From Aplysia californica (lineage: Eukaryota), in assembly GCF_000002075.1 (NCBI RefSeq), contig NW_004798012.1, positions 42,291-106,290 on the forward strand: a DNA stretch of 64,000 bases, written 5' to 3'. Positions 7,794-10,367 of this stretch are shown piece after piece. The notes below the pieces were generated by a model that was not told the origin of the DNA, did no database searches, and saw only the letters and a list, made by a program, of their open reading frames with translations. Position 1 is the stretch's first letter, and each line of letters opens with the position of its first letter. The translations under genes were made by a program, and so were the position numbers.

Positions 7794-8226
7794 CTACATG
7801 ACAACACAACCCTCGTGCTCCTCGTCTGAATCTCTCATCAGACTCCTCAGCTTGTCGATCGTCGTCTCTCTCTCCGGCAGTTCCGACACAGAGACCAGAC
7901 TCACCAGCACCGAAATGCACGACTCTAGCTCCTGCGACCCAAGCCGCATGATTCCTTTCTTCCTCAGGACTTTCCCTCGCCACTGCCACGCCCTCTCACA
8001 CAAAGATCTGCGCACGAGAACCTCCTCGCAGTTTTCCAAGAAACTTAAAGAAAAGCGAAAATCCTCGTGAAATTCCGCCGACTTGTAATAAAGTCTATGT
8101 GCCCTTGGGATAAAGGCCCTTCCGACTTCGTAGGGGTTTAGAGACCACTGGGAAGAGTTCAGACGGGACCAGTTGACATGACTCTTGTAGTTTCTCTCAC
8201 AGGCCGCCAGGATGTGGCTCCTCCAG
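7794..8226 (-). CDS. CXorf38/DUF4559-like protein, coding exon 2 of 2 (aa 79-222, ends ...HEGCVVM-stop)
   Basis: Acceptor ctgtacAG|C at 8226 matches phase 2 (AG|C = Ser). There are 144 open codons including WRSHIL, VNWSRLNSSQWSLNPYEVGRAFIPR and DFRFSLSFLENC. TAG is at 7796-7794. Confidence 0.8.
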
Positions 8227-8265
8227 CTGTACAGATGACACCAACAACAAGAGTTGTTAATTAAA

Positions 8266-8445
8266 CTGTCCCCGTGGTTTTTTGTACCCCACATAATTTA
8301 GCAAAATTTGATACTTTCTTGCATAATTTCTGATTATTTTCCTTTATCATTCTTTGTTAAAAGTTAACAGAATCGCATAATTTCACATTTTTGGGCTCAG
8401 TTTGCATAATTTCAGAATTTTTCTTGCATAAAACGACGGGGACAG
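8266..8445. mobile_element. Short MITE-like element (related element at about 10511-10879)
   Basis: TIRs CTGTCCCCGT / ACGGGGACAG and internal GCATAATTT repeats. Confidence 0.6.
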
Positions 8446-8449
8446 ATTA

Positions 8450-9240
8450 AAGGTAAATGTATGACAACAGTCATTTAAGGTAAACAGGAAACATATATAA
8501 CACCAGTCATTACAGGTAGAGGTAAACACATAAAACATATAAGAACAGTCATTACAGTAGACGTACACATAAAACATATAAGAACAGTCATTACAGTAGA
8601 CGTACACATAAAACATATAAGAACAGTCATTTCAGGTAAACATAAACATAAAACATAGAACAACAGTCGGTGGCCTAGTGGTTAGGCTCTCGGACTCGCA
8701 ACCGTAAGGTCGTGGGTTCGAATCCCGTCAGGGGCCCGACGTTGTGTCCTTGGGAAAGGCACTTTGCACAATTTTTCCTCACTTCACCCAGGTGGAAATG
8801 GGTACCCGGCTATAGACAGTGAACGATCTTGTCAGTTTGATAGTGTTTGAGCGCATGAAATCCGCAGCTTGCACTGTAAGCTTCCGTGGAAGCCGAGAAT
8901 GTTTCTGAGTGTTCTTAGAGGGTCTGCTGGGGTTATAATGGTTGTAAAGCGCATAGAGCATGCTCTTGAGCATGGATATGCGCTATAATTATTATTATAT
9001 TACAGGTAAACATAAGCATAAAACATATATATATATAACAACTGTCATTTCAGGTAGGGGTAAAAATAAAACATATAACAACAGTCATTACAGATAAACA
9101 TTAAACATATAAAAACAACAGTAATTACAGATAATAGATAAACATTTTTAAAATGACAATAATCACCCGTAGACATGAAATATATATATGACAACATTCA
9201 TTAATTAGAGGTTAACATAAAACATATATGACAATGTTCA
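8450..9240. repeat. Minisatellite (unit of about 39 bp) split by the SINE at 8666-8998
   Basis: CATAAAACATATAA.AACAGTCATTACAG units on both sides. Confidence 0.8.
8666..8998 (+). mobile_element. tRNA-derived SINE, family 2 (CORE-like centre, L2-like ATT tail)
   Basis: A box TGGCCTAGTGG, B box GGTTCGAATCC, TGTGTCCTTGGGAAAGGCACTT, tail TGTAAAGCGC...GCGCTATA(ATT)n. Confidence 0.8.
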
Positions 9241-10131
9241 TTCGTCTTGATTTGGATGGAAAAACTACCCATATAACTTAAATGGTAGTTGAGATTTTTA
9301 CTATTGAAGGAGGTGGGGGTCGCCTGGAGTAAAAGGTAAAATTAGCACAAAAAACGGCTTCCAAAGTTTGGTGACTTCTACAACTTCAGTGCCCTTGGAA
9401 ACTGCAAATTAACATTTTTGTGTCTTTTATCAAAGTTTTTTCAATAAAATCAACACAAAAATTAAATGTTTTTAAATGGACAAAAAAAAAGGGTCGTGCC
9501 ATAAAATTTTTAACATTTGATTAAAATTGGCAAACAGATGAGTGTATTTGAGCAGCATTTTATTGCGAGCTAACATCAGAAGCCAAAATTTAGTATATTA
9601 CAACCATGTCTTCTTACTATCCGCTACAGAACAAAGATAGCAGAGAACGATTGTCTTTCACTTTAAAACCAAATAAAATTTTATAAACAATAACCCAGCA
9701 AATGCAGCAAGCAAATCCAAGGGACATAATCCACACAAAAGTTGTTGCCACAATGGTTATATCTCGGTTATCTCCCGTTGATAAAGCCTTTCCTTGACAA
9801 TCAAGACCCGGACAATATTAATTCCTTTCTGCATTATATTGTAATCTAAGTAATCAAAGACATATTTTCGTGCTGATAGCCTCAATTGTCAAGTGACAAA
9901 AACTGAACCAATTCTTTTCATATTCTGAATCTCTCATTGAAGAATATTTTTCCACATAAATAAGTATAGGCTTTGACAAAAGTAAGAAAGATTGCAGGAA
10001 TAGCATGGAACTCTCATTTTCATTATTAATACAAAGAGTACAGATTCTTTATAGATTTGACTTGTGAGTATGAACATTTTTACAAGTGAGCCCAGAGAAA
10101 GTCAACAGTTCCCACAGGTTACAAAACAAAC

Positions 10132-10367
10132 CTTTCACATGTAGAGCACCAAGCAGATTCTCTTTTGCTGCAGTTGAAAACACACACAGGCAAATCACCA
10201 ACAGATTTCTGCATCTCTTTGTGCATCAGAGATATCTTCAAATGTACATATCTGGCGAGGGCATTGGATGCTTCTCTCACAGCCAAATTTGCACACAGCC
10301 AGTTGCGCATGAGCGGGTTACTGACCTCTGAACTGATCAGCTCTTGTCGTGACGTCAGCTGACCCAT
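10132..10367 (-). CDS. CXorf38/DUF4559 (HEPN-like) domain protein, coding exon 1 of 2 (aa 1-78; MGQLTS...WCSTCE)
   Basis: Acceptor tcttgacAG at 10372, then gaacATGG in a good Kozak context. Donor AG|GTTTGT at 10132 (phase 2). Motifs RNWLCA and C62-x3-C66...C74-x2-C77 resemble the CXorf38 N-terminus as I recall it. Confidence 0.8.

Follow-up and report, generated by a model that had tools for sequence, protein, structure and literature searches.

What does a HEPN-type protein of the CXorf38 family do when both of its ends carry candidate lipidation signals? The question is raised by a gene on the minus strand of a 64,000-nucleotide stretch of the Aplysia californica genome (NCBI RefSeq assembly GCF_000002075.1, contig NW_004798012.1, positions 42,291 to 106,290). 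This whole stretch is referred to below as the window, and positions are counted from its first letter. The coding part of the HEPN/CXorf38-type gene runs from 10367 to 7794 and specifies a protein of 222 residues. We find that this protein belongs to a distinct gastropod clade in which both terminal signals are conserved and the catalytic His of the family motif has been lost. Taken as a whole, these features make it reasonably probable that the protein is a doubly lipid-anchored, His-less, non-catalytic membrane adaptor that binds RNA or lipid.

The conceptual translation begins MGQLTS and ends ...EGCVVM at the stop codon, so that, as the original prediction had claimed, signals for N-myristoylation and for CaaX processing can be read directly at the two ends. 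The N-terminal motif (10350..10367, minus strand) matches the consensus G-{EDRKHPFYW}-x-x-[STAGCN]-{P} after removal of Met, and the CaaX box C219-V-V-M (7797..7808, minus strand) closes a disordered acidic tail and is followed at once by the stop codon. In the AlphaFold2 model residues 1-10 score 57 and residues 214-222 below 50 on the predicted local distance difference test (pLDDT), and secondary structure ends by residue 210; the C-terminal tail is thereby predicted to be accessible and flexible.

We retrieved orthologs by word searches and found proteins of 222-233 residues in four gastropod groups. They come from Heterobranchia (Aplysia, Elysia, Plakobranchus, Lymnaea, Bulinus, Biomphalaria, Physella, Candidula and Bradybaena), Caenogastropoda (Babylonia, Nucella, Littorina, Batillaria and Pomacea), Neomphalina (Gigantopelta) and Patellogastropoda (Lottia and Patella), together with further transcript-like contigs. 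Joint conservation of the Gly2/Ser6-type site and the CaaX box, which the original prediction had proposed as a check, holds throughout: an MG start with a PS00008-type myristoylation pattern is present in 35 of the 35 full-length gastropod orthologs, and all 35 also end in C-x-[V/I]-[M/L/S]. Across 25 gastropod sequences M1, G2 and C219 are invariant and Q3, S6, R7, Q8 and E9 are conserved at 90% or more, while in the 13 alignment columns before C219 the majority residue is found in only 8-60% of sequences. We reject a chance origin of the CaaX or MG motif on account of this invariance in 35 sequences beside poorly conserved columns. The orthologous contigs run on for 60-1181 nt beyond the stop codon. 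Even where the rest of the motif has diverged, in Lottia (MGQSLN) and Patella (MGSSHT), Gly2 is retained and position 6 is still small or hydroxyl-bearing.

Variation within the CaaX box is confined to particular positions. The a1 position varies freely (V, L, T, S, R, K, F, C or I), with a2 restricted to V or I and X to M, L or S. By taxon, X is Met in heterobranchs, Leu in caenogastropods, patellogastropods and Gigantopelta, and Ser in two sequences. CaaX boxes with X = Met are typically farnesylated and those with X = Leu geranylgeranylated, by which rule the Aplysia protein would carry a farnesyl group and those of most other gastropods a geranylgeranyl group. Whichever the lipid type, the predicted prenylation signal is constant in the clade. 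Four sequences (P0028, P0030, P0035 and P0036), which represent Gigantopelta and one other ortholog, end CCIL or CCIS, and their doubled Cys could add a palmitoylation site adjacent to the prenyl group.

We used HMMER with a profile of the 25 gastropod sequences to search 1.84 billion representative proteins (E <= 1e-3). The 229 proteins recovered are split by a wide gap between the clade (E <= 2.4e-59) and all others (E >= 4.8e-31). None of the about 147 listed non-clade relatives combines an MG start with an acceptable CaaX Cys at position -4; the frog 'CXorf38 homolog', for example, starts MALPALLARLQC and has no CaaX box. The closest relatives outside the clade are from scallops, comprising one 382-residue protein (Pecten, P0041) and 1174-1896-residue fusions with NPHP3_N/STAND NTPase and ankyrin modules. 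In a maximum-likelihood tree of 110 domains, built by a quick search, the sequences with lipidation signals form one group with a Shimodaira-Hasegawa-like approximate likelihood ratio (SH-aLRT) support of 100. The stem of this clade, at 1.19 changes per column, is the longest inner branch (the median end branch is 0.36), and its inner topology matches gastropod taxonomy. At the level of sequence, the suggestion of an undescribed membrane-tethered subfamily is therefore well supported, with both signals in 35 of 35 orthologs and in none of the about 147 others. An annotation of the gene already exists and the description of the family dates from 2013; the His-less, doubly signalled gastropod clade is new. 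Our literature search found no paper on molluscan CXorf38, on lipidation of the CXorf38 family or on a His-less clade, and molluscs are not listed for the CXorf38 family in PMC3710099.

The second character that sets the clade apart is the state of the HEPN catalytic motif. In human CXorf38 the motif is 162-RNEIMH-167 with D134 as partner (TAMALE preprint, 2026). By profile alignment the equivalent in Aplysia is R162-G-K-V-L-R167-K168 (7959..7979, minus strand), where relatives have RNxxMH or RNxxFAH; the family motif RN-x(2,3)-[MA]-H is thus absent from the Aplysia protein (RGKVLRK). We aligned all profile-search matches, 41 clade members and 137 non-clade relatives, to the profile. A catalytic His at either of two adjacent columns is present in 133 of the 137 relatives but in 0 of the 41 clade members, which have an invariant Arg167 followed by Lys or Arg at position 168. 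The surrounding residues 158-181 hold 6-9 Lys/Arg in the clade versus 3-4 in relatives. Other parts of the motif are retained: Arg162 is kept in 38 of 41 members and Asp134 in 41 of 41, and Asn163 is found in about half of the clade, being Gly in Aplysia. On these alignments, canonical HEPN RNA cleavage has most likely been lost in the clade.

The clade also has a near-invariant block of its own, I118-D134 (IPRAHRLYYKS.EFHED; 8061..8111, minus strand), which no other part of the family shows. Within it are His122, His132 and Glu133, the last two adjoining the family-wide Asp134, and the block is a possible new metal or partner site. Model confidence dips here, to a pLDDT of 60 for residues 121-130 and 79 for residues 131-140.

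The assignment of the protein to CXorf38/DUF4559 is borne out by Pfam. The stored NCBI protein P0001, which we used for all whole-protein analyses while searching the exons separately, matches PF15112 (DUF4559) at 50 bits (E 3.8e-13), above the gathering cut-off of 27. Searched singly, the two coding exons match profile positions 8-56 (15.1 bits) and 74-181 (24.0 bits); the matches are colinear, and consecutive profile positions from separate exons are what a correct splice predicts. The four Cys of the putative Zn-binding domain that the original prediction had recognized, Cys62-x3-Cys66 ... Cys74-x2-Cys77 (10137..10184, minus strand), occupy family-wide columns, are invariant in the gastropod clade and are Cys in 122-145 non-clade relatives per column. 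They match the Zn ribbon described for the family in PMC3710099. That paper assigns CXorf38 to its Swt1-like HEPN clade, annotates it 'Zn ribbon inserted into HEPN ... Active' and suggests a role in defence against RNA viruses. Three queries (exon 2, PF15112 and the Pecten relative) found a single DUF4559-family locus in the 927-Mb Aplysia assembly, a copy count that is a lower bound. The best explanation is that the gene is the only CXorf38/DUF4559 member in Aplysia, that its product is a HEPN domain of Swt1-like type into which a Zn ribbon is inserted, and that it belongs to a slowly evolving, single-copy orthogroup found throughout the gastropods. Elsewhere in the family DUF4559 occurs in fusions, namely GT4-conflict + TRADD-N + DUF4559 + NACHT, DUF4559 with four dsRBDs, and DUF4559 + NPHP3_N/STAND + ankyrin ('TANC2-like' in Pecten). 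These are the architectures of the non-clade members P0112, P0059, P0045 and P0047, and they are of the conflict-system type.

The gene model underlying these comparisons joins two open reading frame (ORF) fragments in phase into the 222-residue protein. This splice, already part of the original prediction, is confirmed by its GT-AG ends, by identity to P0001, by the colinear PF15112 matches and by an orthologous contig. Translation starts at ATG 10367-10365, and the first coding exon closes with ...TGT GAA AG at 10132. The intron (8227..10131, minus strand; 1905 nt, phase 2) has GT at 10131-10130 (GTTTGT from 10131) and AG at 8228-8227 (...tgtacAG). The last coding exon (7794..8226, minus strand) opens with C at 8226 as the third base of Ser79, encodes residues 80-222 and ends GGT TGT GTT GTC ATG TAG at 7811-7794, the stop codon TAG occupying 7796-7794. 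The coding length is 236 + 433 nt = 669 nt, or 222 codons plus the stop, with AG|C as the split codon of Ser79. P0001, 'CXorf38 homolog isoform X2 [Aplysia californica]' (222 aa; XP_005109057.1 and two further accessions), is identical in sequence to exon 1 + Ser + exon 2. In the JGI contig L003 (981 nt), which carries a 78%-identical ortholog, the same junction is uninterrupted (TGT GAG AGC TGG). The ENA genome contig L004 (548 kb) encodes at 6001-6678 an ortholog, P0029 (MGLQTS..., ending CVIS), that has no counterpart of the intron in the Aplysia coding sequence.

The two coding exons of the predicted structure stand, but the gene has more than two exons. In the main isoform the first coding exon (10132..10371, minus strand; residues 1-78 plus 2 nt) has a splice acceptor, cag|G, at 10371, which we infer from the way in which isoform X1 (P0034) joins; the bases before the ATG read ...ctcttgacag|GAACATGG, and the start context, gaacATGG, is good. 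Because the coding exon begins at a splice acceptor, upstream 5′ exons exist and the gene has at least three exons. One of these is an alternative first exon (11740..11786, minus strand) with an in-frame ATG (MGYIWKIGIRYKGNK + AG) and a GT donor at 11739 (gtgaga). Its translation is an exact peptide match to NCBI isoform X1 (P0034, XP_005109055.1; 239 aa), in which a 17-residue extension, MGYIWKIGIRYKGNKRN, is added before MGQL and the Gly2 of the conserved start becomes internal. A run of 201 N bases at 11242-11442, in the 5′ intron between the 11786-11740 exon and the coding exon, could hide further 5′ exons.

We therefore examined where translation starts across the clade. In 7 of 7 orthologous contigs an in-frame stop precedes the conserved ATG, with no other in-frame ATG between the two, and in the Aplysia genome a TGA lies 10 codons upstream of this ATG. 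A G follows the ATG in all seven contigs, and a purine is found at -3 in 6 of 7, a tally in which L011 counts as G only on one reading of its printed context gtcATGG and L010 is A (agcATGG). Thirty of the 35 full-length orthologs begin at the MG start; the rest are two NCBI X1 models and three Logan/ENA gene calls. The leading 'M' extensions of two of these calls (P0019 and P0027; the third is P0024) were rejected on inspection of the DNA, which holds no upstream ATG, and represent non-ATG starts made by a bacterial-style gene caller. Gigantopelta aegis has a comparable X1 model with an unrelated 23-residue extension. Among the Aplysia protein accessions (XP), 3 of 4 are the 222-aa form and 1 of 4 is X1. 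The original prediction had named an upstream in-frame start as evidence that would speak against it; X1 does provide one, but it is a minority model whose extension is not conserved.

How might these features combine? In the mechanism that we favour, the CXorf38 domain has been cut to 222-233 residues, lacking a C-terminal extension and any fused NTPase or dsRBD module, and the clade has gained the conserved MGQL(T/S)SRQE start and the C-terminal CaaX box. Established enzymology leads us to expect that Met1 would be removed and Gly2 myristoylated during translation, and that Cys219 would be farnesylated (geranylgeranylated where X = Leu), the last three residues cut off and the new C-terminus methylated. 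A lone myristate or farnesyl is a weak membrane binder and normally needs a second signal. Near Gly2 there is no Cys that could be palmitoylated, and a basic tract is likewise missing beside the CaaX box, where the tail is acidic; the two terminal lipids are thus probably each other's second signal. Together they would staple the small helical domain onto a single membrane at its cytosolic face, and the basic loop at residues 162-173 may assist. The alternative of a protein bridging two membranes, raised in the original prediction, is without support over insertion of both anchors in one membrane. The old active-site face, with its K/R-rich loop, would bind RNA or acidic lipid, and the product would be a membrane-resident, non-catalytic adaptor or sensor. 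Short branches and strict 1:1 orthology point to a conserved cellular role rather than that of an arms-race effector. A more specific version, in which the HEPN RNase domain has become a non-catalytic module pinned flat by its terminal lipids and the former active-site loop a polybasic surface for RNA or phosphoinositides, is possible but distinctly more tentative.

Several results weigh against this picture of a doubly anchored, inactivated HEPN domain. The AlphaFold2 model is all-helical and well scored (pLDDT 85, predicted template modelling score 0.80), yet a Foldseek search of the Protein Data Bank (PDB) with it returned nothing with E < 0.4. Structural alignment with VIA-align gave top ranks to acyl-CoA dehydrogenase C-terminal bundles (Z 7.3-7.9), followed by the Swt1 HEPN domain 4pqz (Z 7.1, root-mean-square deviation 2.9, 119/136 residues aligned), the HEPN chains 1wwp (Z 6.5), 2hsb (Z 6.4) and 1ufb (Z 5.8), and the sacsin HEPN domain 3o10 (Z 5.7); all these HEPN matches fall below the chance level for helical bundles (Z 8-13). 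P0001 itself has no direct HEPN profile match. Isoform X1, in Aplysia (17 residues) and Gigantopelta (23 residues) alike, would if translated block myristoylation. In addition, the retained Arg162 and Asp134, the half-kept Asn163 and the invariant His132 beside Asp134 suggest that altered, rather than lost, catalysis is possible.

The affinity with HEPN domains nevertheless draws support from the family as a whole. A search of the Atlas recovered DUF4559 clusters at template modelling (TM) scores of 0.78 and 0.73, HEPN_DZIP3 at 0.52 and 0.46, and a PIN_4+WW (Swt1-like) cluster at 0.52. Among 56 family members, 18 have sub-threshold HEPN_Swt1 matches (best E 2.7e-5), 4 match HEPN_RiboL-PSP and 4 match HEPN_AbiU2. 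A search of the PDB by sequence gave nothing significant. Literature support for a HEPN ancestry of the CXorf38 family is good, and the present tests are consistent with it. For this protein by itself the HEPN assignment is putative, since its structural matches stay within the chance range for helical bundles and the catalytic motif is missing.

The retained catalytic residues invite a different reading, in which double lipidation goes together with retained enzyme activity, a rebuilt site (for example His132/Glu133/Asp134 with Arg162) cleaving RNA at the membrane by a logic like that of prenylated OAS1 p46. Conservation of R162 (38/41) and D134 (41/41) would fit such a site, as would H132 and E133, which are invariant only in the clade; the wider family is predicted to be active and is immune-linked (PMC3710099), and prenylation is known to matter for RNA sensors (PMC8357416, PMC7612834). 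However, the block around His132 is poorly modelled, and arms-race effectors would not be expected to show the single copy and short branches of the clade. To our knowledge, moreover, no HEPN RNase lacks the motif His. We consider a rebuilt enzyme unlikely.

If both signals work but not in the same molecule, alternative first exons might switch between a myristoylated X2 and an extended, prenyl-only X1, leaving one functional anchor per molecule and regulating membrane affinity or compartment. X1-type models do occur in two distant gastropods, and the context of the upstream Aplysia ATG is usable (gatATGG). Against such a switch, the two extensions share neither sequence nor length (17 versus 23 residues), three of the four Aplysia accessions are the 222-aa form, the seven orthologous contigs hold no upstream in-frame ATG, and the extended P0019 and P0027 are the gene-caller products described above; we judge it unlikely too, and slightly more so than a rebuilt enzyme. 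It might also be argued that the termini are conserved for reasons other than lipids, the N-terminal Gly for a degron or acetylation and the C-terminal Cys for binding a metal or partner, so that the protein would be soluble. Lipid modification is a prediction from sequence, and the tail before the CaaX box is acidic, not basic. The pattern of variation, on the other hand, is just what prenyltransferases require (Cys at -4 fixed, a1 free, a2 V/I, X M/L/S), and Gly2 and position 6 are kept even in Lottia and Patella, which makes a soluble protein very improbable. Anchoring of a single non-catalytic molecule by both of its lipids remains the reading that we prefer.

Comparison with known systems shows what is shared and what is peculiar to the clade. 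With vertebrate CXorf38 the gastropod proteins have in common a homologous domain, the same Zn-ribbon insert, the family-wide Trp and Asp134 positions and the N-terminal placement of the domain. Vertebrate and most invertebrate CXorf38 members keep RNxxMH/RNxxFAH and are at least 300 residues long or fused to NACHT/ankyrin, dsRBD or Death-type modules, whereas the gastropod proteins have 222-233 residues, lack the His and carry signals at both ends, and no relative has MG together with CaaX. The C-terminal HEPN domain of yeast Swt1 (4pqz) is the best-covering structural match, though within the chance range for helical bundles; because it is listed as inactive (PMC3710099), it offers a precedent for a non-catalytic HEPN domain. 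Swt1 differs in being a nuclear PIN-domain nuclease in which HEPN is accessory, with neither Zn ribbon nor lipids.

The nearest functional analogy is to human OAS1 p46, a geranylgeranylated RNA sensor with the CaaX box CTIL (PMC8357416, PMC7612834). It places a nucleic-acid module of an innate-immunity family on endomembranes through a CaaX box, and caenogastropod orthologs end in the identical CTIL. OAS1 p46 differs in having an unrelated fold, that of a nucleotidyltransferase, in being an active enzyme without N-myristoylation, and in that its CaaX box is isoform-specific and not invariant.

Two-signal anchors are familiar from Src, in which a myristoyl group is paired with a basic patch, and from K-Ras4B, in which a farnesyl group (CVIM) is paired with a polybasic tract. 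The clade would resemble these in combining a weak lipid with a second signal; some orthologs end CVIM as does K-Ras4B, and a K/R-rich stretch is present. The clade departs from them in that the helper would be another lipid, attached at the other end of the protein, and in that its basic residues (162-173) are internal to the domain and adjoin neither lipid. Natural proteins with both N-myristoyl and CaaX signals are uncommon, and our literature search found nothing directly relevant on natural myristoyl-plus-prenyl proteins.

If correct, the proposed anchoring would represent a novel type of nucleic-acid sensor or adaptor resident at membranes, and would provide a natural instance of one protein with both an N-terminal myristoyl and a C-terminal prenyl group. 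Few human HEPN proteins are as poorly understood as CXorf38. The function predicted for its family is that of an antiviral RNase system, and we know of no CXorf38-family member with a demonstrated biochemical activity. A clade that kept the fold through gastropod history, dropped the His and gained two anchors would amount to a natural separation-of-function variant, indicating which surface matters apart from catalysis and pointing to membranes as the site of action. As a small, single-domain and well-modelled protein, it would be convenient for studying the cooperation of two terminal lipids, and the large, injectable neurons of Aplysia make localization tests practical.

The remaining observations concern the sequence within and around the gene. 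A tRNA-like head with a GGTTCGAATCC box occupies about 8667-8737 on the plus strand of the intron. Next to it is a 39-bp tandem array at 8495-8668 (4.3 copies), and a related 37-bp array is found at 9061-9142. ARAGORN and Rfam scans find nothing in the tRNA-like stretch, which is therefore probably the decayed head of a tRNA-derived short interspersed nuclear element (SINE). Neighbouring long ORFs in the window have no Pfam matches. In the 3′ flank of the gene, at 6848-7520 of the window, a tandem or dispersed repeat is suggested by ORF translations in which the motif …IRYIGYVTGTGGK(K/R)THEG… recurs several times.

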